Shown: positions 10,147 through 60,508 of the stretch, in pieces | How the letters are laid out: every line of letters starts with the position of its first letter | Numbering within the stretch: position 1 is the first letter of the stretch | NCBI RefSeq assembly: GCF_031769215.1 | Contig: NW_026782006.1 | Span: 806,001 to 870,000 of the forward strand | Length of the DNA stretch: 64,000 nucleotides | Source: Ylistrum balloti | Taxonomy: Eukaryota | Reading direction: 5' to 3' | The notes under the pieces: model-generated | Seen by the model: the letters and a program-made list of their open reading frames with translations, nothing else | Database searches by the model: none | What the model was told of the DNA's origin: nothing | Made by a program: the position numbers and the translations under genes

Positions 10147-13100
10147 TTAATGGTTGTAGCATCCTTGAAGATCAACCCGCATACAAGGCCTGTGGGAGCG
10201 ATTCCAGTTGGTAGGCACAAACCGGACATACCGTGCGTCGACAGGCTGGGCCAACGACGAAGTATACACACTGCCAGAATCACTGTATCCTGGGTAGATC
10301 TGTAAATTAATAATTAATTTGTCTTCTTGCTTGGGAGAGTATTATTAAGATTTTTATTTTGTTGCGAACACTTGCTTTATGAATAACACTAAAGTAATAC
10401 TTACGACTGATGCAGATGTACTGTTGCAAACGTATATATTGTATATCGGAAGTGATGTGGCTTGACTACTGATGTTGGTATCTTATTTGACGAATATCTT
10501 CCTAAGAAGTAAAGCCGTTGGTGCATTATGAATTCCACACCTTTTTCATTTTACAATATGGCGTTGTATGTGTTCGATACTAGTAGAATACCTGGTAGTT
10601 TCATTGTCATTCACCCTGATGTTTACATTACTTCATTGGATTGACAAAGAAGACTGTTCTGGTACACGTGGTCTTATTCTCCTTGTACAGTTTGCATTCG
10701 TGTAAATCTTTCGTTTATTGCACCAACTGACTCGGTAAAAACATTTAAAATTTCATTCTTTGACCTCGCTTCGTTGATTTTGAATCATCATATTCTTTAT
10801 CAACACACGCACCCTCACACACACGCACACATATGTATAAATAAATATATATATGAAAGCCCACATACTGGGAAAACTGCCATATGCCTTGCTAACTTGT
10901 GTTAAACCCCTTCTGAAACTGAGTCTGTCCTCCACCATATACACTTTATTTGGTATATGGCACAGAGCAGTTACTTTATTAAGAAATGGTATTAGCATCA
11001 TGACTTATTAACGTGATATGTACATTTTTCTGAAGCAACAGTCATACTGCAGCAGTTGTTTTGATTACCTAGGACTTGGTGAGAATATTTACTAGAAAGG
11101 TGATCTTCAAAATGATGCTGGTGATGCATTACTTATAGATTTACCTTTGGACTGACGCCGGAAGTGGTGTAGTTGGTGAAAGAATTGCCATCTACGCTAA
11201 ATTGTAAATAGAACGCTGTTGTGTAATAGTAGCTGGAACAACCTTGCATTTGCACGCCATTAATCTGTGTCACGTTTCCTGGTGGATCAGAATAGTTCAC
11301 TTGTGAGTCTAATCGTTCCTTTAGATACGTTTCTAAGCTCAAGTTCCGTTTGGATAGGCAAGTAATAATGACCAATATTCAAAATATGATATAGGTAAAG
11401 TTAAGTGTTTATTACGGAAGGTTAAGGTCATCATGCCCTGACTTCTAATCTGCGGTAAAGGTGAAGGCCGCATTAATTTTATATAATTTTAAATATTCAC
11501 TATATACCATTTTTACCAGCCTCATCCTGTAATGATCATGACTTACCTAGGTCGACCTGAAGCCATGACTCACTGTCCATTCCATACCATCCCGCTCCGT
11601 TCAACCGCCCATTGTATGCCAGGTAAGTACTGTAGGATTTGTATGCCGACATGTGCGCGTCAGGTACGACTTTTTGACGACTGTCCACTCCCAGACTGTT
11701 ACTTCTGCAGTCTTAAAAGTAAAATATTGTTTTTGTTTACGCAATAAGCGTTAAGATACGTTAGTATTTGGGAAAATGAACCTTATTGTATCCTCAATAC
11801 TTACAAAGATATTTGTTATTGCCGATGATACATAGAATATTTAACACGAATAATGAATCCTCAAGAAAACACTGCAAGAATCATTTCAGGTTAAAATGTT
11901 ACGACATTATTTCCTACTTAATTGTATTTTCTTTAAGGACAAATACAACATGTTACAAGATATTAGACAAAACCTACCCACGTTGCATGTTTTCCCTCCG
12001 TATGGGTGTATACAGGTGCACTGAATGTCGCTTATAACATCCTGACATATCCCTTCGTGTCTGCATGTTGTTCTCGTACATGAATTGCTACCTACATATT
12101 AACATTTTAGTGAAACATTGCTGTTTTAACTTACAACTGCTTAGTTCACTGACATAAGTATTACATGTGGATGTAAATGGTTTGCAGCAAGTATTCACGT
12201 CTTCTGCATTAACAGTAAAACTATTTAACGTAAATTGGAAGGATTAACCAAGATACTATGACGTATTCAGGGACGTTAATTACTTAAAGCTTGTATCAAT
12301 TTCATTTAGTTAAATTAATTTCGATACCCTACAAATGTAATGAAAACTTTATACTTGTACATTTTAATGTTTTGATACATAAGCATGTTGCCTTAAATAA
12401 GGGTTCAATCAAGCTATTGGTATAAGGAAAGGAATTTTAATTTGGAAACGTTAAAATGTTACTGCTGTTGAAGTTGTTTCGTTTTCACCGAATGACTGAC
12501 AAAAATAAACAGATAAGGATGCTAAATATTGAAGATATTAGATATAAGGAAAATTATTGCAACGTTTGATACACAATGAGAAAAAGAAGGTTGTGTAGTA
12601 TGTTACTCACCTCTAACTTTCATCTGCAGTACTTTGTCGGCGTATTTGCCTTGGTAATCAGTAGCCCGGATCGTGAAGGTGTACGTTGTGTCAGCATCAG
12701 GAGCAAGACCCTTTACCAGACCTAATGTGGAATCAAGTGCTACACCTGGGGGTAGAGCGCCTGCTACAACCGAATACGTTACCTGACCTCCTTCTGGGTC
12801 CTAAACACATCAAGTATATCAAAACAATGAACATTAACATGAAATGTTAATAAGAAGTGAGACTAAAAATACAAGCATTCGTCATGAAGGTACTTCATAT
12901 AAAGTGTTATCGTGTACAGGTATATGGCATGTCAACATTAATTAAACTCTAATTTTAATTAAATAAGGGCGAAATACGAACAAAAGATTTACACGGAAAC
13001 CATTGAAGAAGTAAGAGGTGAAGATATCACAAGATGTATTATCGTACATGTAAATGTTCGGTTTGGAAAGTCAGTCAACTTGCTTATAGAAATAAGAGGG

Positions 13101-16100
13101 TCATTACTCTAGTATACTAATTTTTAAGTACTTAAAGTAGCTATTAATTGATATTAGTATAATTATCATATCCTACACTTCACATTCGTTACTGATCATT
13201 TGTTTAATGACGGTAACACATTCTAATCACTATAACCAGGTAAGTAACATACGTCTCTGTTTAAACGTCTCGGATGACGATTTTAACTACAACGAAACTC
13301 TCCAACTTTAAACACTGTGTCATAAATACAGGATCTTGAACGACTTTCTATTCCATATGTTATTCATGAAATGCAGTTAACTTCTTTTTTAATTTAGCAA
13401 GCCAATGGCAAGCTTACAGGAAACAACATAACAAAATCATTGCGACAAGTGTCATAAATCGCATATCAAATAGAAACAAGTTTAAGATGCTTTTCATCAC
13501 GAGATATATTATTTAAGTAAACTTGAAATCATTTCAGTTCTATATCTGTTGTCTTTACAGTTCAAATCCAACATGAGATGATGTGACAGGACTTCATTAT
13601 ATATATCTGACGTCACAATAGACTTTACAAACGGTTTATATTCAGTGAATATACCCAGGAAATATTTTTGTGTATAATGCGTGTGTCACAGCCTATTGTG
13701 CCGTCAGGTCTAGATAAAGCAACGACATCACAAATATATAAAATTGGATTGTGACGTAACAATAATGACCTTAAATAGTAGAAATGCCTTTTTACTATAC
13801 TTGCATGAATAATCAACCATAAAAAATATCTTTAAGATGTGTTTTTACTTGATAATTATGTAGTTTATGAAGCAGGTCTTCATTTCTGAAAAATTTAGCT
13901 CGCCAAAGTTTCGCTTAAATTAAAAATTCTTATGCTGGTTTCATAAATGAGATATCAAATGGAAAGTTGTATATAAGCCTATAAATACAACATGGCTAAA
14001 TTCACTGAATAACAAGGCAATCATGATAATTTTCAGATCGGAATTGTAAGTCCTAGTTCGATCTCAGTTTTACAAAATTATGTTGGACACGAAAGTTTGC
14101 CTGGAAAGTCTCCACAAGTACAAGGTGGTATAAAGTGTCACAGACAAAAACAAATATAGGTAAAATAATGAAAAGGTTGGCAATGAATTACTAGAGCTTC
14201 CAACTGGACGAAAACTTTCTCTCCTCCATGGAAATCCCCGATATGTCCAAAAGGTGAATGTTCTGACCATACCGGTGGCTCACTCAGGATGATCTGCAAC
14301 ATCCACGAATTATGATATTATTAAATAAGATTTGTTTTACTGGGAAATGGCAAATCCTGTCTAAAATTATTCTCTTTTGTTTAACAGATATTTACGCTGA
14401 CCTCTACAAAGCAAGTCATATTTACATCACTGATAAAATCTCATCATATAGAAGAGGTTTTCGGTTTTCATATTTGGTATCCTGTTTTCAATAGTAGTAA
14501 TAGTAGCTCTATTATTCCCGTATTGAAAGATTTCATGAGTTGAGAAACTCATCATACATCAAAACGAATTGATAATTTTTTTTATCGTAAACTTTTTACA
14601 ATTAAGATAATTCCTATCTTGATTGCCTAAATTGATAAAAACGTCCTTACCTCGAACAGATAAAGCAAATCTTCTCCCTCAAAGTAAACTTTTCCGGTAT
14701 TGTTGACGCCGGGCAAGATTTCAATGTCGCCATTGTAACCAGACTTTAGTAGAACATAAAAAACGATGGGAGTGGCGAGAAAGATGATGGTAAAATAGTC
14801 ATACAAACACTAGAGTTTATACGGTAAAACAATGCAGTCAGAACTGTATGTAATGTTTAATGTATAGGTAATGTAATAATGTAGTCATAGTCACCAGAAA
14901 ATAAGACTACAATATTACATATCGAGAGATGTAACTTAATAATGTCAACTTATGTAGGAACAAACATTGGACACGGGGTTTTGGGGAGATGTAACTTAAT
15001 AATGTCAACTTATGTAGGAACAAACATTGGACATGGAGTTTATGGAGACTTAAAATAATAAATGTCGACTTATGTAGGAACAAACATTGGACATGGAGTT
15101 TATGGAGACTTAAAATAATAAATGTCGACTTATGCAGGAACAAACATTGGACATGGAGTTTATGGAGACTTAAAATAATAAAAATGTCGACTTATGTAGG
15201 AACAAACATTGGACATGGAGTTTATGGGGACTTGAAAATAATAAATGTCGACTTATGTAGGAACAAGCATTGGACATGGAGTTTATGGAGACTTGAAAAT
15301 AATAAATGTCGACTTATGTGGGAACAAACATCGAACGCGAGGTTTTGGGGAGATGTAACTTCAAAATGTCGACTTATACAGTGACAAACATTGAATAAGG
15401 GGTTTTGGGGGATATGTAACTTTTAAAAAAAGTCGGGGATGAGACATAATGTATAATACAGAGCAGGGTTACAGCATCCAATATGTTTAGGGAGGGGGTT
15501 ACTGTCACTTTCTCAGTTCCCATCCAAAGAATTTGATTATTCTACTCTTACAAGATCTTATTCTTCCAGCATGTATTGTGTGTATATTAATCAATTTTAT
15601 GAAAATATTTGTTATTTTATGGCTATTTTTAGTTTTCTATTCTTTTTTCAAATACTTTTATCACATGTGTTGCTATCATATTAATTAGCATAATAATTTC
15701 TGCATGACATCATTCCACATATATTGGCCCACTTACACCCTTACTTACCGACATAGTAAAGTTTCCATTATCTTTAGCGTGGACAGTGACACTCGGATAA
15801 TTCACTTGTAAAGGACTGTAAAACAAGTTCATTTCTTTAATAATATATTATCATATTGTGATGTGAATGCTGTTTCTTTAAGTATTACACCAAAATAGAA
15901 TGTTACGATTAAAATACAACACAATATACAGTTTTATAAAACATGTCTCGTATATGAACTAAATTTAGCTTTCATTGTTTTCAAATATGTAAGGTATGAT
16001 TTGATATATTAATTAATTAATGATCAAATTAAAAGCAAAATACATCTAGATACATTTTTACTAGTCATCCCAAATACGGTACTGTTTATTTGTTAACTTC

Positions 16101-16249
16101 ATGTATCATTCTTTAACCAGATAAGTTTAAGGTCGTAATATTTTTTATGATAAAAAACTTACATACTCTTCAGAAGCAGCTAAAACAGCAAGGGACTTCA
16201 GAAGAACCACCAGCGACAAAGTCTTGAACAGGTTGTACACGATCGCCAT
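10147..16249 (-). CDS. Paralogue A: secreted cubilin-NTD-like / He_PIG Ig-like / EGF / F5-8C (discoidin) protein, ~366 aa
   Basis: Exons 16249-16167 (signal peptide MAIVYNLFKTLSLVVLLKSLAVLAASE), 15815-15749, 14743-14651, 14293-14192, 12800-12611 (DPEGGQVTYSVVAGALPPGVALDSTLG..FTIRATD), 12091-11978 (6-Cys EGF), 11711-11547, 11278-11145, 10299-10147 (ARYVRFVP..PCMRVDLQGC*). All junctions GT-AG and phase-compatible; exon sizes match the paralogues. Confidence 0.88.
14925..15425. repeat. ~60-bp minisatellite (~8 copies) in intron 2 of A
   Basis: Unit GACTTATGTAGGAACAAACATTGGACATGGAGTTTATGGAGACTTAAAATAATAAATGTC. Confidence 0.93.
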
Positions 16250-17490
16250 CTTGAATTATAGTCACATTCAGCGTCGTTTTCCCCTGGAGACCCAAGATAC
16301 CGTTATCTCTAAGTAGCTGTATATATACCGTCTCAGTACATAAAGAATTAAAGATCCACGTCCAGATTTTCCTTTCAAAATAGATTTAATTAGGAAATGT
16401 AAACAGTATGAATATCCTTAACTAATTATTTTTATCATACATAATTTTATCTATTGACAAATGGAAGTTAAATAGATAGAGGAGTTAACGAGAATCTACA
16501 AAGGCGATAAGTTTGCTTTTTAGAAACTACCGAATTTGCTATTTCAAACAACATATGACACGTGGTTTCGGATGAAAGATTTATGGAAAAATCGTTTTTC
16601 AGTATTTGCACTTTTTTGATGGGATTATTTTTACTCGTATAAGGAAGATGATATAACAATACAAATTATAAGAAGTAAAAAATGTACTTTATGTGTACTT
16701 TTTATGCTAATATGGTGCTCAAAGGTATACGTGTTGATGGTGTGGCCTTTTTATCTAAGGTTACAAATAAGCCTGTGTCATCATGCATGTTTCTGTTGCA
16801 GCATTATTGCACCAAATTTGCATGTTTTGGGTTGGTCCTGGGCAAGCTGACCCAATTCCAACCGAAGACCAGAAACAGGGGCATTTATACATTAAAGGAT
16901 TTAATTTAAATCTATCTTTCTAGTGATTATCAGTACTGTTTGCCACATAATTCCTCTTTACACACAAAAAAACACGCACCTGTGGAATTCGACTTGAACA
17001 AATCTGAACATCCATGAAGGCGTCAAATAAATGTATTAATTCCAGTATCTCTAAAATGTGAAAGTCACCTTCACTGCACCCGTTATAGACAAAATTAATG
17101 TTTTGTTAAGTAAACATTTAATGCGATAAAAATAAACAAACGTTGCTTAACTGAACAAAAATCATCAGTTGAGCTTAAAGATAGAATTGCAAAATAAGAA
17201 GAAAACAAAATGGAAGAAAGAAAGAAAAACAAAAATATATAAATGATGCAACAAAATTATGATGCTGAGGCACTTAAGATTATTGTGTTATTTTGTTTTA
17301 CATGTATTTTAAAGTGTAAAAAAAATCTATGTACTTTTATATTGATGTCCATTTTCGGCGATCACTTTGTATTTAGTAGCAACAGAAGTCACGTGATATA
17401 TCAAGCCATGTATGTCAGCTAAACATTTCAGTAGATTGTACAAGGAAACTTATCGCTAGGTCCCAACACCACTCAACATCTCGAAACAAA
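16250..17490. promoter_or_regulatory. Putative bidirectional promoter region between divergent genes A and B
   Basis: Inferred from divergent start codons 1242 bp apart; a palindromic E-box (gTCACGTGAt) lies about 100 bp upstream of the B ATG. Confidence 0.5.
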
Positions 17491-20400
17491 ATGGCGGCTA
17501 TCAAAACAACGTGCCTCGTGCTGTGTTTCATTCCTTACACTATAGCAAGGTAATGTATATTGTTTTATTTTATTTATCGTTCAGAACATCTGGTTTACCT
17601 ATATTGTCGTGCAACAAGTCAGGTGAATAAAAAAAGAAAGAAGAAAAAATACAACATAATGTCATTTTAGAGCGACTTAGTTGTTAAAGTTGATAAGAAC
17701 CAATGAACAAACATGTATAACGTCGTCTTCGTTTCGAAGTAGCATACGATCGGCTAATTGTACTCAAAACCAAAGGCAATTCTCTAAACGGAACATCATT
17801 TGGAAGATATTTACTTTTAGTACTGAAAAGAATGAGTATAGTTTTCATGTACAGTTGTAAATGTACCATCTAAATCAAGTTTATCACTGTTTTCTAAATA
17901 TTGCTGTAAAATAGATATTAGTAACTTACGATAATGTTTCGACAGGTATATCCATTGCTGATCTAGACTGTACATAAATAGATGTTGAATGTCACTTGTG
18001 GATTTGTTTTCTCTGTGTTCAGAACATATTGCAATATGATACTTTGCTTTGTTTAAAAGTTTTTTTGAGATACAATACCCGAATGTGTTGGTGACAGCCG
18101 AGACGGGTGGTAACCTGACTGTTGAGGTAGGTGTATAGACACAGGCGAAATATAACCTTATCATATATACTTATAATACAGCTGTTTTAAAATGACAATA
18201 TGCAAGTGTCTCCATAGGAGTGATTTCTCTCGTTAATTCAAAATATATTTATCAGACTACATGCATCAGCATTTGGGTTTTTACCATTTCGAAAGTTCAT
18301 ACGATATCTATGCAATTTAATGATTATCATATGATATCTATGTAGTTTAATCATTCTAAAGAATGTTTTCACAACACGCAAATATATGAAGTGGTGAAAC
18401 AGTTAAGCAGATGACTCCGTTATTTTAAGTCCATCAAACCATTATCGTTATAAGATATCATTATACAGGCAGGACCACAAGGTGGGAATATCATAATGAA
18501 ACCCACTGGTAATGGAACAGTCTATATTGGTAAGACCGACATGCTGAAACTCTTTGAGGTAATTGTCTATATCATTTGAGTATACTTTATCATATCATGT
18601 ATGTAGAAAATTTAAGATAAAGATAAATGCTTCAAAATAAATTCGTAAAAACAACGAAACAATTTTTAAGATTAAATGTTCAATTTCACTGATTGTTACA
18701 CCATGCTGAACATAAAGCCTTGTAGAGGATCTTGTGACAATCTTTACATCATAACAATTAGGTGTATATAAAAGGTAGGTTATCACCTTTCATTTTATAA
18801 TTGGTAAATTATCATCTTTTCAGTTTATAATTGGTAGGTTATCACCTTTCAGTTTATAATTGGTAGGTTATCATCTTTTCATTTTATAATTGGTAGGTTA
18901 TCATCTTTTCAGTTTATAATTGGTATGTTATCACCTTTCATTTTATAATTGGTATGTTATCACCTTTCATTTTATAATTGGTAGGTTATCATCTTTTCAG
19001 TTTATAATTGGTAGGTTATCATCTTTTCAGTTTATAATTGGTAGGTTATCACATTTCAGTTAATAATTGGTAGGTTATCACTTTTTCATTTAATAATTGG
19101 TAGGTAATAACCTTTTCAGTTTATAATTGATAAGTTATCATCTTTCTGTATATAACAGACAGGTTATCACCTTTTTAGTTTATAATTGGTAGGTTATCAT
19201 CTTTTCAGTTTATAATTGGTAGATTATCATCTTTCCCTATATAACAGACAGGTTATTGCCTTTCAGATCGTCAACAGCATGCCTCCAGTGTGGGAACTGA
19301 ATGCTGTTCATGGTTCTCTGGGCACGTTTCTGGGAGGAGCTTCTATTTCACTGAATGTTGAAGCTGTGGTATGTTTGTCCTTCCCAAGATCGCCACTTCA
19401 GGAATAATTCATTGTTATGTTCTGTCTCTTTTTTCCGGTTTTATGTTCGACTTTGGTACAAAGTGTCACTGGTTTGGAACGGAAACATATACACACCTAA
19501 CATTCTTTCTGACGGAGCCTATGTACAAAATTAATCACGATTGATTTAATCATGGTTAAAGTCAGTCTCGATATCATATCTGGATTCAAATAGAACAAAT
19601 CAGTTATACAATCCAGTGTCGTTCCCTGTAGTATTTAATAATGAATTCTTATCAAAATGAATAATGTACATGCGATGTCTATGGAACACTACCCCTTTTA
19701 ATGAATTGCTCATCTTAATTAATGATAATCTCCATATTACGGGTCGAGAACGCAAACGCCATCGGAATAGAAATCATAATTGAATTTTAAAACTTTTTTT
19801 TCTATTAAATCAGTATTTTTCAAGGAAAATTTATCAAGAGTTTAAGAGATGGGCTTAACATATTTTATTGTAGGATCCTGAAGGAGGTTCATTAAAATAT
19901 GAGAAGGTCTCTGGTGCTTTGCCTCCTGGTGTTCATCTCAACAAAAACACTGGACAGATATCCGGTACAGCCCCGGATGTAGACGCTACCTATCAATTCG
20001 GTATCCGGGTAACAGACAAGCACGGAAAATATGCCGACAAAATTTTCTCTATAGACACTAGAGGTCTGTTTCTTGATTAAAACAAAAACAATTAAAATCA
20101 GAATGATTTATTGTACAACCACGTCTAACAGATCGTTTTTGTGTTATTTCTTACTTGTTAGGAAACATAGGCCTTTTGGTTGAAAATCGTTATTTTCTCT
20201 GTTATAATAGGTTTAAGATTTGTTTCTAGTGTAACATAATGTCTTTATTGATATTATTTCCATGTGATGTAATATTACTCAATGGATTCTATTTAAAAAT
20301 ATCCTTATCTATAACCTGATTTAATTTCACCTTTAACTTGTTGTTTGATAAATATATCTACACGTTCGTAATAGCTTGTGGTTTCTTTCAGATAACAACC

Positions 20401-21697
20401 AGTGCTTGAGTAACCCGTGTACTCATGGAGGAACATGTGTGGATGATATTGACCATTTCATTTGTACTTGTCAGCAACACTATGGCGGGAAGACATGTGC
20501 TACCAGTAAGTCTACAGCGTACCGTCTGTAAACTTGTTACAACCCACACTTCATGCTTGCTCGGAATTTAAGACTAGACGCACTGAGAAATTCAATTAAA
20601 TTCAAATGATTTAACGATTGTTCCATATCACAACTCATTAATTCAAACAAAATACAATGGTGTGTAATTTTACTATCACTTGAGAAATTAAAGTCTGTTG
20701 TTCAAATATCGGAGTATGTATACGTGTAAATATAAGTCTTGTTTGGGAAATAAACGTTTGCGTTTTAACACAAAAGCATGAAATAACATTGTATTATCTA
20801 TGTGTGACAGACTGTGCGAGTCATGCATTAGGTGTGGACCAGAGAAGTAAGACAATACCTGACGCACAGATGTCCGCTCACTACTCATACGGCGACCATC
20901 CAGCCTCCGACGGACGTCTAAACGCTCCTCAAGGCTGGATCGGACAGAACACAGCCTCTTGGCTACAGGTTAACTGATTTGTAACTTAGAAGATTGAACA
21001 AAGGACACAAAGAACAAGAGAAATATAGCATTAAAGAAACTACGTGCTGATATTTCTTCATTTTAGTACTCATTATTGTCAGTAGTGAATAATTTCAAAA
21101 GACCGGCAATCCTCGGAGACGTAGGTGTTTAAAAAGTAATTGGATTATCGCACATTTCATGTTGATTTCAATGTGTATGGTTAAACAATAAATGGTAGTT
21201 ATGATTCAGGTGGATCTTGGTGATGTCATGGAAGTACACGCAGTCGCTACCCAAGGGTACACATCGACTTACTACACGTCAGAGTACCAACTACTGTACA
21301 GTTCCGACGGGAACAGCTTTGTGAACACTAAGAATGGAACGGACAATATGGTAGGCTGATCACACTAAAATATATTGAACATTTCTATGTTGGTATTCTT
21401 GCCTGATCAGTGTTAAAGCCTAGCGAGGCAGATAGTTTGTAACACATATATGCATATTGGCAATATGCCAAATATCTATTAAATAGAAAGAATAATATAA
21501 ATGTTTCTTTCATCTATTTTTATGTTTTAAATTTTATCTCATTGTAGGTGTACAGCGGAAGTTCGAATGTCAACACCGTTACCAAACACGTGTTAACGTC
21601 TCCACTTCGGGCTCGCTTCATCAGATTCCAGCCTGTCACATTCAATAGTTATCCGGGCATGCGCGTTGAGGTTTACGGATGCGAGATTAATTCGTAG
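17491..21697 (+). CDS. Paralogue B: secreted cubilin-NTD-like / He_PIG Ig-like / EGF / F5-8C protein, ~356 aa
   Basis: Exons 17491-17549 (MAAIKTTCLVLCFIPYTIA), 18060-18126, 18469-18558, 19267-19368, 19874-20063, 20392-20505 (DNNQCLSNPCTHGGTCVDDIDHFICTC..C), 20811-20968, 21210-21350, 21548-21697 (RARFIRFQP..GMRVEVYGC). GT-AG junctions, continuous frame, AATAAA at 21754. Confidence 0.9.
18775..19266. repeat. ~29-30-bp minisatellite (~16 copies) ending at the acceptor of B exon 4
   Basis: Unit GGTTATCATCTTTTCAGTTTATAATTGGTA. Confidence 0.93.
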
Positions 21698-21753
21698 CCA
21701 ATGTCGATTCATTCATACAAATGATCTGTTATTTGTTTTAGTTGTAATATCAG

Positions 21754-43444: not shown

Positions 43445-43457
43445 AAAGTCCTTTATT

Positions 43458-46345: not shown

Positions 46346-49300
46346 TCATTCAGACCCGTACACATGGCATCCGTAGACTTCCACTTTTAAACAAGGTCTT
46401 CTTGAATAAGAGGTGGGATGGAAACGAATAAATCTAGCAACTATGGGCGTTGGTAGATTTTGGAAGTACGGGCTTGATGAATATCTCGCAAGAAATGTCT
46501 GAAAGGTAATTAAATATACATACATAGTCATTGAATAAACGGTTCTCATCATTCAGCTCTTTAATCGTTGTATGAATAGGCTATGCCAATTACACTATAC
46601 TGTACCAATTAAACATTAACAAACAACTAGTCGTTTGGAAAACTTCAGTAGAAATTTCATTATGTGATAAATAACACTTGGTGTTCCAAAAGTCGCTCAC
46701 TATCATATACTGCTATATATAATTATGCGATCACGACCATTAATAACAGGTAACATCGTGACAATGTTTTAACTGCTTGTTGACATTAATTTCAGCAAAG
46801 AATTTCTAGAAGATCAGAAGATTGCTGACATACACAGAGAACATGACAACTTTCCGATTTTTTAAAATTACAAAATGAAGCTGAAATTATTGGGGTGATT
46901 TGAGAGGCAAACGGTAGCTACTCTCTAACCCATACCATGATATTTATATACATAGCTTTTTTGTGTAAATATCATCTTTATACGATAGGATGTACATAAA
47001 CATATAGGTAATGGTTAGGCTACTCTCTAACCTATTGTATTGAAATTTGTTCAGACACATATTATTGCTGCAGTACTCTCTGAACCATTAAATTCATCTC
47101 TTTTAACCACAACTTTCATTAGATAAATAAGAAGATAAAAAAGTAACGAGATTTGCACGCAGTTATAAATCGCCTCTATGTTCCAGATTGAAAGCGAAAT
47201 ACAAGATAGTGCACATCGGCATCTATATCAAAAAACCATTTCACCCGATTCTAATTTTCTTAAATCTCCTAAGTTTAAATCCTTTAAGTATCACTATGAG
47301 TCATAGTCAATAGTACCTATAGATACAAATCATCAATACAAATTCAGGATTAGATACAGTAAAGACAGAAACTAACTGCATCATACAGCTGTTTTGTCCT
47401 TCTAGTCAGTGATGCTGAGAGTCCAGATTTTGGTGTAGTTTAATTCATTATTTGGCTACACTACTGTGTTTAATCTAAAACGTGTATCGAAACGTGCCAT
47501 TGTTAAAGACATCTTCCCTATACATACATAATCATTTCCGTTCGTGCCGTTGATTTTCTGGAAGATGTTACCGTCAGTGCTGCAGGCTAGGGTGTAGGCT
47601 GTCGTGTACTGGGAACGAGAATAGCCTTGGGTCATCACTCTGTAGATCCTAGTCAGGTTACCTGTCGTGGTAATCGTAAATAATTTCTCTTTTACACTTA
47701 AAGGTGTATTCTTTCGTGCCACATTTTAATTCATTCGACCAGTTTAGAATGTACACAACTACTTGAAATCGACCTAAATGATCTCATATATGAAAATTAT
47801 GGAATTTATGGAAATATGAGACTGGTGCACTTCAACATCTAGATTTTGACTTTTCTTTCGATCACTTTGGATTTTCCTCAGTCTTCAATCTTCAGTGATT
47901 AAATATGCGAGTTATAAACATCTCGGACAATGGGAGATACTGTTCGTCAATAGTAATCCTCTTTTACAATATAATTACGAGGTGCAAGGGTATAGCATTT
48001 TACAGTCGAGGACATCTCCAATTCTGACCTGTAGTCAAAAGTATGAGTCTTGATTTTCACCCTCAAGATATAGTTTAGCTGCAAATCAATATATCTGTTT
48101 CATTTTTTTTAAACTGAGTCAATCATTGAATTTAACTTTGATAAAAGCAATTTGAACTTAAATATCAAGTTTATGTTATTAACAAAAAAACATATTTAAT
48201 TGAGTGTTTCGCACTAATCATCAGACTTCGTTCGCATTATCCACAGGGAAACTAAGTCCAGAAAGGTTTTATGAAATGCTGCTAGAGTTCCTACACAAAC
48301 ACGTCTAGTATTGATATTAATAATCAAATACAGATATAACATATCAATTATTGCAAAGTCGAATACAGTAAATACAATGGAAATATAAACCACTTTGGAT
48401 AAGAGGAAACGCGTGTCCAATTTAGGCGAAAACAAACATTCATGTTTTCAAATGGAATCAGCGGATCAGATCATACATCTATTGAAAAATTCAATTTACT
48501 GTGATGAAATAACCTTAAAACAATGCAACGTTTGTAAAATATTGAACTGAGTTTTTCCTCCATGTAACTTTTTAATTAATCTTATTTGAATACTGGAACG
48601 GTTCAGAAAACGTCATTGAAATAATTCAATATTAAAAAATACGAAATTGATTGAATTTTCGGGTAAGTGCACCTCCCAATCTGTTTTTGGACAGTCATCT
48701 AAAGTAGGTGTAGACTTATGTAGGAATAAGATATATTATCAACCAGATTATTTGAAGAAGGGAAACGTACACGAGACACATAAGTGATAGTATCTTTTAA
48801 AACAAATAATAAGTCAGGTAAAGTATGCCAAAGAATGAATCATAGGAATCATATAGCTGCGAAGTCCTTCTGGGATTCGTCGGTGATGCTAAGGGCCTAC
48901 ATTTTGAAGCCTATGCGGCGACGGAGAAAACTACAAACTGATCGAAATATTAAAATCTAGGTCGGTGCTCCCTAATGCAATAAATTTCATAATTTCCATT
49001 GAACTGTCTGAATATTTCAGAAGAATTTTAAGTACACCTGTTAACGTCGTCAGGTGGCGCGCTGTGGTAAAACATTCGCTTCTCACTTAGCCGTCCGGGG
49101 TACGACAGGGAGTCACCAGCACGATTGTGTGGGTTTCCACACAAGACCATATCCACAGATAGAATTAGGTCAAGCCACATAAGAAAAACGTTCTTTTTTG
49201 TGTGTATACAGTACCATGTTCTTTCTCTACTTACCTAAATCGATCTGGAGCCATGAGTTGGAGTCTTCTCCACACCATCCGTAGCCGCTGGCGGCGTATC

Positions 49301-52300
49301 TACCATTGGATGGCAAAAGCGTACTGTAGGTTTGGTAGGCAGTCATCTGAGCGTCGGGTATGGTGTACCGGTGCTGTACACCAACAGCCCGACTAGTACA
49401 TGCTAGAAAAAGAGGGAGAAAACGATATTTCTATCAAACATAGGAACTCTTCTTCGTTTGAAAATCTGAGTTTGAAACAGAAAAAGGATTTCTATGTCCA
49501 ATTCATTGTTTTAATGATGTGACGTATCACTATGTCACTGAACAAATTTCTTGCTAAATGATATACAGTATAATGTATCATACAACAGGATGATCAGACA
49601 CCAAACCAGACATAAAAGGTAGAACAATATGAACGTAAAGAGATGTACCATACCATTCACAAAAAAAAAAAAAAAAACCCTCGGATGAAAGGATGCAGCC
49701 CAAATTGACATCTCCGCAAAAGTGGTAATTTCAGAATATTCGGTAAAATAGTCTACATTACGTTTATTACAGACTATGCCTTTATAAGTCTGCCTCCCTA
49801 AAGTTTTGATATATACATATAATTTAAGATATTGAAAAGTTTGGTCTTGGAATGAAATCACAAAAGACAAAGTGAATACATGTAGGCGATGTCTCGTGGG
49901 AACTGATCTTTCTCGCTAAGTGTTTTATATGTAGAGTTAATTGACAAATCATCCAGCAACCCCATCCATCCAAAGTTTCGGAAATCCGCTCCCCCTTTTT
50001 CTACAAAAATCTTGACTCCAGTACTCACGCTGTTTTACATACCGTATTCACACTTTTGGCCTCCGAAGGTTATTGTACAGTTACAGGTAAACCCTGCCTT
50101 CGTATCCGTACACTCTCCGTTGTTTTGACAAGGATTCGACGTACAATGATCAAATTCTGAAATATAGATTCAATTTACTTATCGTTGAAAAAACAGCACG
50201 TAGTAACCACATCTTTAATTAACCATATTATTATACATGTATAAATTACCAAACACATAAATTGAAGATTTCTATTTTATCTGATAACAAAATAATTTTA
50301 CAGAAATAATCATTTTCCACCACAATATATTGTCATAACAGTAAAGACAAGATACATTATACCTAATGTTTCCATCCTGAAAACAGCATCGGCGTATTTA
50401 TTATGCGAGTCTAATGCACGGATTGTGAATGAGTAGCTATTGGTTTCATCAGGAACCTCGCCCACCACGTGACCGGTTGTGCCGTTCAGCTTGATACCTG
50501 GTGGAAGATCTCCGGCGACAAGCGCGAAGGTGATGGTACCGCCTTCTGGATCCTCAAAGCGAATTCATATTTGTGGTATTTGTAAGTTGCTTCTAACGGT
50601 TACATTGAAAATAATACAATTCTACGACCACGGTATGGGATCGCTAAACATATATCTGTGTTTACATTGAATGCTTCACATATTCATGATAGTCGGATGT
50701 TATTTTAGTAGAAGACATAAATTTTTTAGAAATCTAGCAATAAAATCTAGTCGAGGAATTCCGACCAGCTGTAGTATCTAGTGTACTAACGTCACATTCA
50801 CTTTTGTGTACTTTCAGTGTATTGTATAAGTAGTACCTCTGCTTCAAGTTTCAAGTCAACCTTCTCTTCTCCTTTAAAGGTGCCGAAGAATCCAACATGA
50901 GCATGCGCAGACCAAACAGGTGGTAAACTAGTAGCAATCTTAAACATTTAAAAAAATCCATTTAAACAACCACTTAAACACGGACAAAAAAAGTTTTTCT
51001 ATAGACGGTTTCATCCAAATTTAGCAGTGTGTTTACTATCAAAAAGGATGTTCCTCCCATTAAGTGAATTTTACAGTTTAACCATAACAAAATCTAGAAT
51101 AATTGTCCTGTACAAGTAAACATACAAAGCAGATCGTCATTGTCGAATTACAGAACAGCATACATAACAATGGGCCAGTCAGCGTGAACGGTCACCTGAC
51201 TATAAAGATCTATAAATAACAGTAACAGTGGTAGTGGGAACAATGATTAAAGGATTAAAACAAATATCATATTAACTATTTAGTTAATAAAAAATACCAA
51301 CACTGTTCCAGTTTAGCTCCCCTTCCCCCTTCACTGCTTAATGATGCCATTGGAAATGAAGAAGCAGTTTTGTGTTTTGATTTCGGAACGCCAATAAAAA
51401 TATGTAAATTTTATCAGAACTATGGCAGGATCAATCACTAAAATTTTTAGATCAATCTCACTTGTGGAACTTGAGGATTTTAAAAAAAAATATGTGTTGT
51501 TGAAGAAATGAAAGATTTTGCAAACATGTTACAAAATGCCTCCCATTGCTTCCATGTTGAACACCCTCTCATTATTCCTACCAATTTTCAGCTGAATAGT
51601 ATCAGTGGAACAGGAGAAGAAGTAAACAATTTTCAGACGGTGACTGACCCTTAAAATTAGACCAGTGGTTACATCTAAGGATCAATCCTGGCAAGTTCCA
51701 ACTGAATACTGCCGGTAGAACTGGACAGGAAGTTTAATATGTGAAGACTGGGAATCACCACCACTTAACTCACTTCATTTCTTGTTGGATATAGAGAATA
51801 TTCCGCAAAGTTACTAGACTCAGGTCAGTTGTGTGGTATGGTTGAGACCATCGATCTCGCGTACCACAAGTATGATACAGAGAAGATATATGAGCTCTGA
51901 GTACAATATATCACCTGGGAATGGATAAAGTAATATTACCTGGATAATGTGACGTAGGTCTACGTCCTCCAAGTACACAGAACCTCCATTTGGTCCGGGC
52001 AGTACGTGCAAGTCCTGGGTCATACGACCAGCCTGCCAACAAAGGATAGATTTAAAATGACCAGCCTGCCAACAAAGGATAGACTTACACTGACAAGCCT
52101 GCCAACAAAGGACAGACTTACAACGACAAGCCTGCCAACAATGGATAGACTTACAATGACCAGCCTGCCAACAAAGGATAGACTTACAACAAGCAGCCTG
52201 TCAACAAAGGATAGACTTACAACAACCAGCCTGCCAACAAAGGATAGATTTACAACAACCAGCCTGCCAACAAAGGATAGGCTTACAATGACCAGCCTGC

Positions 52301-55300
52301 CAACAAAGGATAGACTTACAACAACCACCTGCCAACAAAGGATAGACTTACAACAACCAGCCTGCCAACAAAGGATAGACTTACAACAACCAGCCTGCCA
52401 ACAAAGGATAGATGTACATCAACCAGCCTGTCAACAAAGGATAGATTTACAACAACCAGCCTGCCAACAAAGGATAGACTTACAACAACCAGCCTGCCAA
52501 CAAAGGATAGATGTACATCAACCAGCCTGTCAACAAAGGATAGACTTACAACAACCAGCCTGCCAACAAAGGATAGACTTACAACAACCAGCCTGCCAAC
52601 AAAGGATAGATGTACATCAACCAGCCTGCCAACAAAGGATAGATGTACATCAACCAGCCTGCCAACAAAGGATAGATGTACATCAACCAGCCTGTCAACA
52701 AAGGATAGACTTACAATGACCAGCCTGCCAACAAAGGATAGACTTACAACAAGCAGCCTGTCAACAAAGGATAGACTTACAACAACAAGCCTGCCAACAA
52801 AGGATAGACTTACAACAACCAGCCTGCCAACAAAGGATAGATGTACATCAACCAGCCTGCCAACAAAGGATAGATGTACATCAACCAGCCTGTCAACAAA
52901 GGATAGACTTACAATGACCAGCCTGCCAACAAAGGATAGACTTACAACAAGCAGCCTGTCAACAAAGGATAGACTTACAACAACCAGCCTGCCAACAAAG
53001 GATAGATTTACAACAACCAGCCTGCCAACAAAGGATAGATTTACAACAACCAGCCTGCCAACAAAGGATAGATTTACATCAACCAGCCTGCCAACAAAGG
53101 ATAGACTTACAACAACCAGCCTGCCAACAAAGGATAGATGTACATCAACCAGCCTGTCAACAAAGGATAGATGTACATCAACCAGCCTGTCAACAAAGGA
53201 TAGACTTACAATGACCAGCCTGCCAACAAAGGATAGACTTACAATGACCAGCCTGTCAACAAAGAATAGACTTACAACAACCAGCCTGCCAACAAAGGAT
53301 AGATTTACAACAACCAGCCTGCCAACAAAGGATAGGCTTACAATGACCAGCCTGCCAACAAAGGATAGACTTACAACAACCACCTGCCAACAAAGGATAG
53401 ACTTACAACAACCAGCCTGTCAACAAAGGATAGACTTACAACAACCAGCCTGCCAACAAAGGATAGATGTACATCAACCAGCCTGTCAACAAAGGATAGA
53501 CTTACAATGACCAGCCTGCCAACAAAGGATAGACTTACAACAAGCAGCCTGTCAACAAAGGATAGACTTACAACAACCAGCCTGCCAACAAAGGATAGAT
53601 TTACAACAACCAGCCTGCCAACAAAGGATAGGCTTACAATGACCAGCCTGCCAACAAAGGATAGACTTACAACAACCACCTGCCAACAAAGGATAGACTT
53701 ACAACAACCAGCCTGCCAACAAAGGATAGACTTACAACAACCACCTGCCAACAAAGGATAGACTTACAACAACCAGCCTGTCAACAAAGGATAGACTTAC
53801 AACAACCAGCCTGCCAACAAAGGATAGATGTACATCAACCAGCCTGTCAACAAAGGATAGACTTACAATGACCAGCCTGCCAACAAAGGATAGACTTACA
53901 ACAAGCAGCCTGTCAACAAAGGATAGACTTACAACAACCAGCCTGCCAACAAAGGATAGATTTACAACAACCAGCCTGCCAACAAAGGATAGGCTTACAA
54001 TGACCAGCCTGCCAACAAAGGATAGACTTACAACAACCACCTGCCAACAAAGGATAGACTTACAACAACCAGCCTGCCAACAAAGGATAGACTTACAACA
54101 ACCAGCCTGCCAACAAAGGATAGATTTACAACAACCAGCCTGCCAACAAAGGATAGATGTACATCAACCAGCCTGTCAACAAAGGATAGATTTACAACAA
54201 CCAGCCTGCCAACAAAGGATAGACTTACAATGACCAGCCTGCCAACAAAGAATAGATTTACCACAACCAGCCTGCCAACAAAGGATAGATTACAACAACC
54301 AGCCTACAACAACCAGCCTGCCAACAAAGGATAGACTTACAACAACCACCTGCCAACAAAGGATAGATTTACAACAACCAGCCTGTCAACAAAGGATAGA
54401 CTTACAACAACCAGCCTGCCAGCAAAGGATAGACTTACAATGACCAGCCTGCCAACACAGGATAGATGTACATCAACCAGCCTGCCTACAAAGGATAGAC
54501 TTACAATGACCAGCCTGCCAACAAAGGATAGACTTACAATGACCAGCCTGCCAACAAAGGATAGACTTACAACAACCAGCCTGCCAACAATGGATAGATT
54601 TACATCAACCAGCCTGTTAACAAAGGAAAGACTCTAGTGAGGATGTAGTTAACGTCTATATCTATACAAAGAATGTACACACACGTGAATCTTTTGTTTT
54701 TATTTAATTAGATATAAGCTTTCTTTTACCCTTTTTTATCAGAAGTATACTTGCTAGTATTCAATCCAATTAACAATTTGGCTTCAGAGTTTTCAATGTG
54801 CTTCTATAAATAGGCAAACATGTTTCCTTGTAGAATAAACATCGTGATTTATTGTACTATCCGATGATATCGATATAACGTAAAATATCGTAGGTCGTCA
54901 GGTTTGAGTTCAGTAACGTATTAATAAGGCACAATACACCTTGTTTATTGAATATCAAAATATTAGATGCTGACAGATACAACTAAGAAGCGTCCTGTTA
55001 TCGTAGATCGTAAAGTTATCCAATAACACCTCTGGGAGTCTGCAATGATTATAAGGAAGGTATTACGTTCAAGCATGTTGTTTCTGGTTATCTCTCTCGG
55101 GAAATTTCAGACATTCAAGTTACCTGTAAGGAAACGTTACCGTCATCCTGGGCCGCTACGACGACACTCGGGTATCTGATGTCGAAAACTCTGAAATGGG
55201 AAACCTTATTGTAGAACATGACAACTTGATGTCTAACATTCTGAAATGGGAAACCTTATTATAGAACATGACAACTTGATGTCTAACATTCTGAAATGGG

Positions 55301-58300
55301 AAACCTTATTATAGAACATGACAACTTGATGTCTAACATTCTGAAATGGGAAACCTTATTATAGAACATGACAACTTGATGTCTAACATTCTGAAATGGG
55401 AAACCTTATTATAGAACATGACAACTTGGTGTCTAACATTCTGAAATGGGAAACCTTATTATAGAACATGACAACTTGATGTCTAACATTCTGAAATGGG
55501 AAACCTTATTATAGAACATGACAACTTGGTGTCTAACATTCTGAAATGGAAACCTTATTATAGAACATGACAACTTGATGTCTAACATTCTGAAATGGAA
55601 AACCTCTGAAATAGGAAACTTTGTTGTAGAACATGACCACGTGATATCTAACATCCTGAAATGGGAAACCTTGTTGTAGAACATGACCACGTGATATCTA
55701 ACATCCTGAAATGGGAAACCTTGTTGTAGAACATGGCTACGTGATGTCAAACTCTCCGATATAGGAAATTTTTTTTATAAAGCATGACTACGTGGTGTCA
55801 AATACTGCGAAATGAGAAACATTGTAAATCACAAGTACGTGATGCCTAACTGTCCGAAATGGGAAACCTTAGTTCAGGGTAAAACCTTATCAAACAAACA
55901 AAAATGGGAAAGACTACTCCGATTACACAACCACCATTGTCATGGTCAGTTTATGTACATCTCACATTCAATATGGGGCTCCGTTTTAGTAATTCTTCAC
56001 AATGTGAAAAATTTGTTTTCGAATTACCCCTAAATATAAGTAAAGAAAATCAGACGATTCCATTGTTTTCCTTTCGATCCGCTGTCTCTGGCCAATTTCT
56101 CTCTCTGACACTTTCACTCTCACTTAGTACATCCAGGCATAACAGATATTTTGTTTATAATTGTTCTATTTACATAGTTTGAATTTTCGTTCTTGAAAAT
56201 TTAGTTTTAGAGTATCCAGAGTAAACACTGAAAAGCATTCTGTCGAAACGTGCTCTTTGGAGTACTTTTATCAGCTCTCGGGATGGCTTTGAGAAATACG
56301 TTGTGAAATATATCGAAAGGAGACAAAAGAAAATGAATCCGCAAATGACGTACAAGTACATTGTAGATTGTGGAGACATCTCGGTTCTTCTCTTCATTCA
56401 TTATTACTACGGCTTATATTTAAAGGAAAAACGAGTAAAGAAATATAGAAATAGTAAATAAATGTGTTCCTTTCCTAACACAGGCTGTACTGTAAAGCAC
56501 ACGTAATAGAACAGTTTCTGATGGAAAAACTTACGTCTCTTTTCTATTCATAGGAGGAATACAAAGATTGTACAAAAGACACACAAGTGAATAACACCTT
56601 TTAATACAAAGTTTGTACAAAAGACACACAAGTGAATAACACCTTTAAATACAAGGATTGTACGAAAGACACACAAGTAATTACCATTTTTCAATGGTCA
56701 AATATTAGATAGAGTAAAGAATAACAATGAATTCCACTGCATCATACTGCTGTTTCCTCCTTCCAGGACTCGTCAGTGAAGCTACATCATACTGCTGTTT
56801 CCTCCTTCCAGGACTCGTCAGTGATGCTACGTCATACTGCTGTTTCCTCCTTCCAGGACTCGTCAGTGATTCTACATCATACTGCTGTTTCCTCCTTCCA
56901 GGACTCGTCAGTGATTTTCCTGAATTTTGAAGCCTAGGAGGCGACTGAGGAAAATCTAAAGTGATTGAATTTTTTTCAAATCTAGACGGGTGCAGCAACC
57001 CCATAATTAAATAAATTGGCAGTAGGGGAAAGTGAAGGCCTATTACACATGTTGTCATTAAGCCTATTACACGACATGTTGTCAGTATGGCTACTACATG
57101 GACATGTTGTCAGTATGCCTATTACATGACACGTTGTCATTAAGCCTATTACATGACATGTTGCCATTATGCCTATTGCATGACATGTTGCCATTATGCC
57201 TATTGCATGACATGTTGTCAGTATGCCTATTATATGACATTTGTCAATAAGCCTATTACATGATATGTTGTCAGTATGCCTATTACATGGACACGTTGTC
57301 ATTAAGCCTATTACATGACACGTTGTCATTATGTCTATTACATGACACGTTGTCAGTATGCCTATTACATGGACACGTTGTCATTAAGCCTATTACATGA
57401 CATGATGTCTTTAAGCCTATTACATGACATGTTGTCAGTATGCCTATTACATGACATGTTGTCATTAAGCCTATTACATGAAATGTTGTCATTATTCATA
57501 TTTCATGACACGTTATCATTATGCCTGTTTTATGACACGTTGTCAGTATGCCTATTACAGGACACGTTGTCATTAAGCCTATTACAGGACATGATGTCTT
57601 TAAGCCTATTACATGGACACGTTGTCATTAAGCCTATTACATGACACGTTGTCATTAAGCCTATTACATGACATGTTGTCAGTATGGCTATTGCATGACA
57701 CGTTGTCATTAAGCCAATTATATGATATGTTGTCATAAAGCCTATTACATGACATGTTGTCATTATGTTTAGTACATGAAACGTTGTTGTGTATTACCTG
57801 ATATGTAGTCATTATGCCTATTACATGGACACGTTGTCAATAAGCCTATTACATGACACGTTGTCATTAAGCCTATTACATGACACGTTGTCATTATGTT
57901 TATTACATGACATGTTGTCAGTATGGCTATTACATGACACGTTGTCATTAAGGCTATTTCATGACATGTTGTCAGTATGGCTATTACATGACATGATGTC
58001 TTTAAGCCTATTACATGACATGTTGTCAGTATGCCTATTACATGACATGTTGTCATTAAGCCTATTACATTACACGTTGTTATTAAGCATATTACATGAC
58101 GCGTTGTCATTAAGCCTATTACATGACATGATGTCAGTATGCCTATTATATGACATTTGTCAATAAGCCTATTACATGATATGTTGTCAGTATGCCTATT
58201 ACATGGACACGTTGTCATTAAGCCTATTACATGACACGTTGTCATTAAGCCTATTACATGACACGTCATTAATCCTATTACATGACACGTTGTCATTTAG

Positions 58301-60508
58301 CCTAGTTCATGACATGTTGTCAGTATGCCTATTACATAACATGTTGTCATTAAGCCTATTACATGATATGTTGTTAGTATGGCTATTACATGACATGATG
58401 TCTTTAAGCCTATTACATGACATGTTGTCATTAAGCCTATTACATGGACACGATTGTCATTAAGCCTATTACATGACATGCCTTTAAGCCTATTACATGG
58501 ACACGTTGTTATTATGTCTATTACATGACATGTTGTCAGTATGGCTATTACATGACATGATGTCTTTAAGGCTATCACATGACATGTTGTCATTAAGCCT
58601 ATTACATCACACGTTGTCATTAAGCCTATTACATGAAACGTTGTTGTCTATTACATGACACGTTGTCATTTAGTCTATTACATGACATGATGTCTTTAAG
58701 CCTATTAAATGACATGTTGTCATTATGTCTATTACATGACATGTTGTCAGTATGGCTATTACATGACATGATGCATTTAAGCCTATTACATGATATGTTG
58801 TCATTATGCCAATTGCATGACACGTTGTCAGTATGCCTATTACATGACACGTTGTCATTAAGCCTATTACATGACACGTTGTAAGTATGCCTATTACATG
58901 ACAAGTTGTCATTAAGCCTATTACATGACATGTTGTCAGTATGCCTATTACATGACACGTTGTCATTAAGCCTATTACATGACACGTTGTTGTCCATTAC
59001 ATGACACGTTGTCATTAAGCCTATTATATGACATGTTGTCATTAAGTCTATTACATGACATGATGTCTTTAAGCCTATTAAATGACACGTTGTTATTAAG
59101 CCTATTACATGACGCGTTGTCATTAAGCCTATTACATGACATGTTGTCATTAAGCCTATTACATTACACGTTGTTATTAAGCATATTACATGACGCGTTG
59201 TCATTAAGTCTATTACATGACATGATGTCTTTAAGCCTATTAAATGACACGTTGTTATTAAGCCTATTACATGACGCGTTGTCATTAAGCCTATTACATG
59301 ACATGTTGTCATTAAGCCTATTACATGGACACGTTGTTATTAAGCCTATTACATGACGCGTTGTCATTAAGTCTATTACATGACATGATGTCTTTAAGCC
59401 TATTACATGACATGATGCCTTTAAGCCTATTAATGACATGTTGTCATTAAGCCCATTAGATGACACGTTGTCATTAAGCCTATTACATGATATGTTGTCA
59501 GTATGGCTATTACATGACATGATGTCTTTAAGCCTATTACATGATATGTTGTCAGTATGGCTATTACATGACATGATGTCTTTAAGCCTATTAAATGACA
59601 CGTTGTTATTAAACCTATTACATGACGCGTTGTCATTATGTCTATTACATGATATGTTGTCAGTATGGCTATTACATGACATGATGTCTTTAAGCCTATT
59701 ACATGACACGTTGTCATTAAGCCTATTACATGATATATTGTCATTATGTCTATTACATGACATGATGTCTATAAGCCTATTACATGACACGTTGTCATTA
59801 AGCCTATTACACGACACGTTGTCATTATGTCTATTACATGACATGTTGTCAGTATGGCTATTACATGACATGATGTCTTTAAGGCTATTACATGACATGT
59901 TGTCATTAAGCCTATTACATGACATGTTGTCAGTATGTCTATTACATGACATGTTGTCAGTATGCCTATTACATGACATGTTGTCATTAAGCCTATTACA
60001 TGGACACGTTGTTATTAAGCCTATTACATGACGCGTTGTCATTAAGTCTATTACATGACATGTTGTCAGTATGGCTATTACATGACTTGATGTCTTTAAG
60101 CCTATAACATGACATGATGCCTTTAAGCCTATTAATGACATGTTGTCATTAAGCCCATTACATGAAATGTTTGTCATTTTGCCTACAGGAATATTATCTG
60201 AATTGGGCATAATTACTTTAAACACTTGTCATCCGCTAATGAAAGGTTATTATAGAAACACAAGGTACTTACAAACAAACTACATAAGTACCTATAAAGA
60301 AGTTATTATTATCAACATCTCCTGTACTAATGTATTTTAAATCTATATGTTCGTTGATACACGTGTACAATATTAGAATATGATAATAAATATTTCCCTT
60401 ATTGATAAAACAAAGATCTATCAGGCCAGTCATCCTATCAATTTACAATATATAAACTTACCCATCATCTGCTGCAGTCGCTGTAACTAAAAGTAGTAAA
60501 ACAATCAT
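46346..60508 (-). CDS. Paralogue E: secreted cubilin-NTD-like / He_PIG Ig-like / EGF / F5-8C protein, ~355 aa
   Basis: Exons 60508-60462 (MIVLLLLVTATAADD), 55190-55124, 52032-51940, 50938-50837, 50552-50363, 50156-50043 (EGF), 49402-49235, 47661-47528, 46498-46346 (VARFIRFHP..PCLKVEVYGC). Phase-compatible; exon sizes 67/93/102/190/114 as in A. Exon 1 is the least certain because it lies 5.3 kb from exon 2. Confidence 0.85.
49053..49150 (+). mobile_element. Possible degenerate tRNA-derived SINE head in intron 7 of E
   Basis: GGTGGCGCGCTGTGGTAAAACATTCGCTTCTCAC resembles an A-box-containing tRNA 5' half; the B-box is poor and there is no complete cloverleaf. Confidence 0.3.
52025..54625. repeat. 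33-bp minisatellite (~79 copies) ending at the acceptor of E exon 3
   Basis: Unit AAAGGATAGACTTACAACAACCAGCCTGCCAAC. Confidence 0.97.
55188..55795. repeat. 50-bp minisatellite (~11-12 copies) ending at the acceptor of E exon 2
   Basis: Unit TCTGAAATGGGAAACCTTATTATAGAACATGACAACTTGATGTCTAACAT. Confidence 0.95.
56738..56915. repeat. 45-bp tandem repeat x4
   Basis: Unit CATCATACTGCTGTTTCCTCCTTCCAGGACTCGTCAGTGAWGCTA. Confidence 0.9.
57030..60170. repeat. ~27-bp degenerate minisatellite (~3.1 kb) with a hairpin core, intron 1 of E
   Basis: Unit CATTAAGCCTATTACATGACACGTTGT; the core ATGACA-cgt-TGTCAT is an inverted repeat. Confidence 0.95.

Follow-up and report, generated by a model that had tools for sequence, protein, structure and literature searches.

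We analysed a window of 64,000 nucleotides from the scallop Ylistrum balloti (contig NW_026782006.1, positions 806,001 to 870,000 of the forward strand, assembly GCF_031769215.1) and found a cluster of five genes for discoidin-headed proteins whose N-terminal module resembles the trimer-forming segment of cubilin. All positions given without a locus name are those of the window. The DNA is AT-rich, and gene models put together from six-frame segments with the help of splice sites and of BLAST between paralogs place five intact nine-exon genes on alternating strands at 10147-60508, exactly the number of genes and the outer limits claimed in a preliminary description of this DNA. No stop-free frame around an exon of the five genes is longer than 126 residues.

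The products share one order of parts: a signal peptide (exon 1), a cysteine-free module of about 52 residues (exon 2 of 67 nt and exon 3 of 87-97 nt), a He_PIG domain, i.e. a dystroglycan-type cadherin-like Ig domain (exons 4 and 5), one EGF domain (exon 6), and one F5/8C, or discoidin, domain (exons 7 to 9). Domains were called from Pfam matches of single exons above or near the curated cut-off. We found He_PIG in all five genes on exon 5 alone (25.8-44.9 bits, 1.5e-5 to 1.6e-11), EGF in five of five (18.8-38.5 bits, 2e-3 to 1.3e-9), and F5_F8_type_C again in every gene, at 18.5-29.4 bits per exon fragment. Exons 2 and 3 matched no Pfam family, either separately or joined. Beyond the signal peptide, the Kyte-Doolittle mean stays at or below 1.5 in every 19-residue window. 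Hence, from the signal peptide and the absence of a membrane segment, the proteins are predicted to be secreted. The Ig-like domain, single EGF and single F5/8C domain without a transmembrane segment, all claimed earlier, are thus borne out by Pfam and hydropathy.

Gene A lies on the minus strand at 10147-16249 and encodes 366 residues, with its signal peptide at 16167-16249, the module at 15749-15815 and 14651-14743, He_PIG at 14192-14293 and 12611-12800, EGF at 11978-12091, and F5/8C at 11547-11711, 11145-11278 and 10147-10299. Gene B (plus strand, 17491-21697, 356 residues) has its signal peptide at 17491-17549, the module at 18060-18126 and 18469-18558, He_PIG at 19267-19368 and 19874-20063, EGF at 20392-20505, and F5/8C at 20811-20968, 21210-21350 and 21548-21697. 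For gene C (minus strand, 25078-32809, 368 residues), the corresponding exons are 32727-32809 for the signal peptide, 32035-32101 and 31668-31764 for the module, 30023-30126 and 29512-29701 for He_PIG, 27032-27151 for EGF, and 26717-26884, 26106-26242 and 25078-25218 for F5/8C. Gene D (plus strand, 34064-43444, 352 residues) comprises 34064-34116 (signal peptide), 34205-34271 and 34569-34655 (module), 34986-35087 and 35346-35535 (He_PIG), 37483-37596 (EGF), and 37690-37847, 42943-43083 and 43298-43444 (F5/8C). Lastly, gene E (minus strand, 46346-60508, 355 residues) has its signal peptide at 60462-60508, the module at 55124-55190 and 51940-52032, He_PIG at 50837-50938 and 50363-50552, EGF at 50043-50156, and F5/8C at 49235-49402, 47528-47661 and 46346-46498.

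Introns are GT-AG throughout the five genes, with intron 3 of gene D (GC-AG) as the sole exception, and their phases are mostly common to all five; intron 3 of gene C is in phase 1 versus phase 0 in the other four. At the donor of D intron 3 (34655/34656) the dinucleotide is GC, and a D-clade relative (locus L005, ~234) continues with Ala after the same exon end. Since L005 reads on with Ala past this exon end, the GC donor appears to be conserved in the clade of gene D.

Subtypes, relatives and head-to-head gene pairs

Relatives, which come from marine metagenome and other assemblies, were found by scanning metagenome contigs with the exon-5 alignment, which gave 12 loci of 55-81% identity, and by a profile search of short database open reading frames, which added one further relative on a 782-kb contig (L013). 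The relatives have the same exons, canonical splice sites and the same intron phases around the module. In other searches with the He_PIG exon, the best 150 matches of the exon-5 profile were all giant multi-repeat He_PIG proteins and none a family member, a search of the ESM Atlas with exon 5 returned generic He_PIG clusters only, and a homologous-protein search with the stop-free open reading frame around exon 5 of gene C found nothing.

A maximum-likelihood tree resolves four clades, A, C+E, B and D, with support of 100/100 for B and D together. The five genes fall into two old subtypes of a single secreted family: subtype I comprises gene A (A clade) and genes C and E (C/E clade, C on a long branch), and subtype II comprises gene B (B clade) and gene D (D clade).

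We found that the subtypes face each other in fixed combinations. A gene of the A clade faces a gene of the B clade in the window and in L003, and in L013 a subtype-I gene faces a B-type gene, as judged by exon sequences (the L013 genes are not in the tree). Genes of the C/E and D clades likewise stand head to head in the window, in L004 and in L011. Between the start codons, the spacer of genes A and B (16250-17490) is 1.24 kb and that of genes C and D (32810-34063) is 1.25 kb; we infer that both are shared two-way promoters. The divergent start codons of L004 (2329-2564) and L011 (721-956) are 235 bp apart in comparison with ~1.25 kb in the scallop, which would make this spacer a very compact putative two-way promoter.

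Because the head-to-head pairing is conserved, it points to shared regulation, and because the subtypes are kept as such pairs in several genomes, their co-expression is likely. Mixed trimers of the paired subtypes are therefore plausible from gene arrangement, the only evidence from which they are read. A precedent for mixed cubilin trimers is Drosophila Cubilin/Cubilin-2 (PMC8710305). New in this analysis are the relatives that share the exon structure, the four clades and the conserved head-to-head pairs, and the pairs may hint at heterotrimers.

The discoidin exons carry marks of the subtypes as well. Subtype I (A, C and E) has an extra Cys near the discoidin C-terminus (R/H-P-C, exon 9) and a phase-1 intron after V-D-L-G at the junction of exons 7 and 8. 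Subtype II has P-G in place of R/H-P-C, and its intron lies five residues earlier, in phase 0; intron 7 is accordingly in phase 1 in A, C and E and in phase 0 in B and D.

The N-terminal module and its likeness to cubilin

The module opens with a strand, YP-x-V-x-V-x-A, continues with three strand-turn units of about 11 residues each (G-N/D-L-x-hydrophobic, G-D/N-I-x-hydrophobic-x-P, and G-T-V-Y-hydrophobic), and closes with D-L and a short helix. Compared with itself, it is most similar at a shift of 11 residues, and the similarity rises again at 22-23; MAFFT twice superposed unit 1 on unit 2 (alignments A4 and A7, which were set aside for this reason). A chain with three short repeats that are individually unable to complete a turn is consistent with a module of the cubilin type. 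Positions within the module are invariant across the family, and N-glycosylation sequons lie inside it. The motif proposed earlier, beginning YP(N/S)V, fits genes A, B and D well, whereas C (FPNV, GTLL, GTVLF) and E (GNVSL, QDLHV) differ from it in several places. In comparisons of the window genes with their relatives, the module exons have nonsynonymous differences (pN) of 0.12-0.21 versus synonymous differences (pS) of 0.7-0.9. Since pN is low at saturated pS and is similar to that of the He_PIG exon, purifying selection acts on the module as strongly as on a known domain.

Cubilin is the vitamin B12 receptor, and the three-chain beta-helix at its N-terminus is its trimer-forming part. The structure of this N-terminal region (human residues ~41-81) is PDB entry 6GJE (Larsen et al. 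2018; PMC6283879). The human cubilin peptide that the preliminary description had given as the counterpart of the module is letter-perfect, corresponding to residues 16-53 of chain 6gje_B, and a 61-residue extension of it was likewise verified against this chain. Comparing module alignment A6 with an alignment of 21 vertebrate cubilin N-terminal exon open reading frames (A9), we found an hhalign probability of 89% (P 2.4e-6) over 37 ungapped columns; joined module alignments reached 87-91%, including 90.9% for the joined alignment of 16 sequences. In comparison, the top score among 400 column shuffles of the cubilin alignment was 16.6 versus 30-34 for the real one. With HMMER, the cubilin peptide scored 16.0 bits against a profile of the five window sequences, 15.3 bits against a profile of 16 sequences, and 14.5 bits against the exon-split alignment A6, which corresponds to E-values of ~0.07-0.2 at the size of the PDB. 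None of 20,000 shuffles reached the 14.5-16 bits of the cubilin peptide, and the next match to a real protein in 546,000 residues had 5.8 bits. Identity between module and cubilin is 20-29% over ~38 residues. The cubilin beta-helix exon ends in phase 0 after C-L-H-Q, since the cubilin open reading frames diverge from the protein sequence right there, and hhalign places the end of module exon 3, likewise in phase 0, within one residue of this exon end.

The modules of genes D and B were modelled as single chains with AlphaFold2 (alignments A6 and A8, 26 rows each). Mean predicted local distance difference test (pLDDT) values were 68.5 for the D module and 77 for the B module, with a core at 80-85. 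DSSP assigned almost no strands to either model; both are open chains rather than a compact sheet or a four-stranded blade. Searching 350,542 PDB chains with the D model, Foldseek returned cubilin (6gje_B) as its sole match, a weak one (E 2.3, template modelling score 0.52, root-mean-square deviation 3.5 Å, 40 columns). The AlphaFold2 training cut-off is earlier than the release of 6GJE in December 2018, so the module model is unlikely to be a memory of that structure. Among the fold clusters of AlphaFold DB, the D model weakly matched residues 43-80 of a 163-residue protein (35% identity), and the B model weakly matched residues 42-79 of A0A482XEF8, named 'Cubilin', and residues 30-67 of an 'EGF-like domain-containing protein'; four of the six matches listed lie at residues ~30-80 of short N-terminal proteins.

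VIA-align, run with both models against 48,161 chains, gave weak matches to a contractile-injection-system baseplate chain, the phiKZ central spike and a VgrG spike and to nothing else (6ORJ, 6SJL and 7AEF, the last as chain 7aef_q). These belong to Gp5/VgrG-type central spikes of phage tails, contractile injection systems and type VI secretion, and we read the stretches that matched as intertwined beta-helices of three chains. The cubilin structure paper itself likens the cubilin helix to phage tail spikes and to the spike of the type VI secretion system (PMC6283879). Each structural match is statistically weak; what may count is their agreement in kind, as they are mostly cubilin N-termini or spike proteins. 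A frame of L011 that runs through an intron (2569-3075) had no match in the PDB.

The module might also have no assembly role. The proteins would then be monomers of the EDIL3/lactadherin kind, with EGF and discoidin domains and a flexible, glycosylated extension at the N-terminus. In keeping with this, the module belongs to no Pfam family, its model confidence is moderate, and it contains the sequons. Purifying selection equal to that on the He_PIG exon at saturated synonymous divergence, invariant positions with an 11-residue periodicity, and the core pLDDT of 80-85 argue otherwise, and we consider such an extension very unlikely.

Several results weigh against a cubilin-type module. The AlphaFold input alignments were shallow and split by exon, and the B model had no Foldseek match among the same 350,542 chains. 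A profile built from the metagenome sequences only was weaker (9.6 bits by HMMER, 69% by hhalign). PDB-wide hmmsearch with the module profiles (A3 and A6) listed no cubilin (6gje_B) at E<=10; the HMMER forward filter drops matches above roughly E 2, and the full 110-residue cubilin chain evidently falls under that line. Cubilin has neither the family-invariant Pro nor the G-T-V-Y motif, and the scallop module, unlike that of cubilin, is followed by no coiled coil: He_PIG starts at P-P-V-W about 8 residues past D-L, where AlphaFold gives only a 5-residue helix. With no CUB domain found by Pfam, the absence of both coiled coil and CUB domains is as previously described. Finally, the PDB-wide lists were led by designer beta-propellers (Bagel and Cake), followed by actinohivin and uL2 at 13-16 bits, and one designer blade by itself scores 9.7-13.5 bits with HMMER and 71% with hhalign (P 3.7e-5). 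The exon-3 profile alone did not find cubilin in the PDB either.

These lists could point to a different fold, in which the module would be a single four-stranded beta-meander, like a PQQ propeller blade, that packs on He_PIG or joins other chains in a ring-shaped propeller hub. The designer propellers at the top are built from a blade of an archaeal/bacterial cell-surface protein, the alignment of one blade at 9-13.5 bits brings in the family-invariant P and G-T-(V/I)-Y, and RACK1 blades reach ~12 bits in the same search. However, the strong E-values of Bagel and Cake are inflated because many identical blades are summed, and the blade score falls as more family members are included (13.5 to 9.7 bits) whereas the cubilin score holds (15.9 to 15.1 bits). 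The joined module has no PQQ or WD match in Pfam at E<=10, there is no antiparallel sheet in either, almost strand-free, AlphaFold model, and no propeller appeared in any structural search (Foldseek of the PDB, VIA-align and AlphaFold DB). We know of no natural precedent for a lone propeller blade at the N-terminus of a secreted protein. Hence, we regard a blade as quite unlikely. Since actinohivin and uL2 reach ~16 bits, a score of ~15 bits is not unique for the module profile, and by sequence cubilin leads the single-unit matches, though by a modest margin only.

The likeness to cubilin could instead be convergence on a G-x-hydrophobic-x-hydrophobic strand-turn pattern, the module being a trimeric or otherwise fibrous beta structure of independent origin. 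An identity as low as 20-29% over ~38 residues would fit this, as would the sub-threshold cubilin match in the database-wide HMMER search and the phage and secretion-system spikes, which match the models as well as cubilin does. Convergence is less easily squared with an alignment that spans all three units in 37 columns without a gap, with a score far beyond the column shuffles, with the position of both modules at the mature N-terminus, and with the same intron phase at nearly the same position at the end of the module. Moreover, the AlphaFold DB matches with a telling name or fitting residues are cubilin-type N-termini. We therefore consider independent origin unlikely.

The cubilin reading of the preliminary description held in every targeted test (hhalign, HMMER, Foldseek and AlphaFold DB matches). 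Its claim of profile similarity stands (hhalign 89-91%, HMMER 14.5-16 bits) and does not extend to the PDB-wide HMMER search, and we grade the reading as partly supported. Judged by sequence and models, the module probably folds as a cubilin-type three-chain beta-helix.

Minisatellites and other features of the window

Very long minisatellite arrays, with units of 27-69 nt repeated as many as 117 times, occupy both ends of the window and several introns of genes C, D and E. They lie at 871-3400, 27488-29527, 30454-31509, 35839-37402, 38099-42874, 52027-54633, 57047-60185 and 60966-62325, and introns 1 and 2 of gene E are filled by them. Some arrays yield stop-free frames of 350-570 codons that mimic open reading frames, and the strong local GC skews of the window are due to the arrays.

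A 50-nt tandem repeat at 55177-55768, which begins within exon 2 of gene E, contains copies of the acceptor region of that exon ('...GGTTTCCCATTTCAG'). Since this repeat duplicates the exon 2 acceptor, a row of look-alike splice acceptors stands upstream of the real one. Upstream of the cluster, overlapping open reading frames of 212 and 120 codons without a Pfam match (8467-9203) may be the remnant of a mobile element. A Pfam scan of the other open reading frames of the window gave no match.

Proposed assembly and comparison with known systems

Taken as a whole, the family is best explained as a trimeric discoidin-headed binder assembled through a cubilin-like intertwined module, and we put the probability of this explanation at roughly 0.6. 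Three chains would wind their three units together in the endoplasmic reticulum into a three-turn, three-sided intertwined beta-helix. A unit of 11 residues cannot complete a turn unaided and would thus form one side of the helix; with three chains contributing a side apiece to every turn, a beta-helix can close, as it does in cubilin. In the resulting trimer the chains would be interlocked, with three He_PIG-EGF stalks that each carry a discoidin head, and the free end of the helix would be capped either by the conserved N-terminal strand of the family itself or by amnionless. The discoidin heads would be of the sugar- or lipid-binding kind, with a ligand of the glycan, lipid or matrix class. 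The trimer would bind such a ligand trivalently, a logic comparable to that of collectins or C1q.

Alternatively, the proteins could form a second class of cubam-type receptor, in which mixed trimers of subtypes I and II dock via the beta-helix on amnionless or an amnionless-like membrane protein. We hold this extension to be improbable; if it were true, molluscs would have membrane-anchored endocytic discoidin-headed receptors with a specificity set by the expressed gene pair.

In the literature searched, we found neither this architecture nor a cubilin-type module in any protein other than cubilin. If the trimeric binder is real, the module would serve animal extracellular proteins as a portable unit for trimerisation and offer a compact (~50-residue) natural trimerisation tag, and a likely trivalent recognition molecule would be added to mollusc biology. 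The subtype pairs, head-to-head across genomes, would also allow a direct test of whether gene arrangement encodes which chains form a mixed oligomer.

In their predicted secretion and in an EGF domain followed by a C-terminal F5/8C domain, the scallop proteins are like EDIL3 (Del-1) and MFGE8 (lactadherin). The vertebrate EDIL3 and MFGE8 have two to three EGF domains with an RGD motif, two discoidin domains, and neither He_PIG nor an N-terminal assembly module. In contrast, the scallop proteins have one EGF domain without RGD and one F5/8C domain, plus He_PIG and the N-terminal module, which sets them apart from that family. With the Gp5/VgrG-type spikes (6ORJ, 6SJL and 7AEF), the likeness is that of the models, as these were the only VIA-align matches to both.

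The Drosophila Cubilin/Cubilin-2 complex on Amnionless (PMC8710305) has two paralogous cubilin-type chains in one complex, which may be compared with the scallop subtype pairs. The Drosophila proteins are true cubilins with CUB domains, whereas the scallop pairing is read from gene arrangement only.

Cubilin itself differs from the scallop family in its eight EGF and 27 CUB domains, as the scallop proteins have one EGF domain and no CUB domain in 352-368 residues. The scallop module in turn has a longer conserved N-terminal strand (F-F-x-V-x-Y-P-x-V), the invariant Pro, G-T-V-Y and an extra phase-0 intron that splits it, none of which is seen in cubilin. Common to both are a module at the mature N-terminus of a secreted chain, three strand-turn units of ~11 residues with G-N-L, N-I and G-x-I cores followed by D-L, a nearly equivalent phase-0 intron after the module, and EGF downstream.

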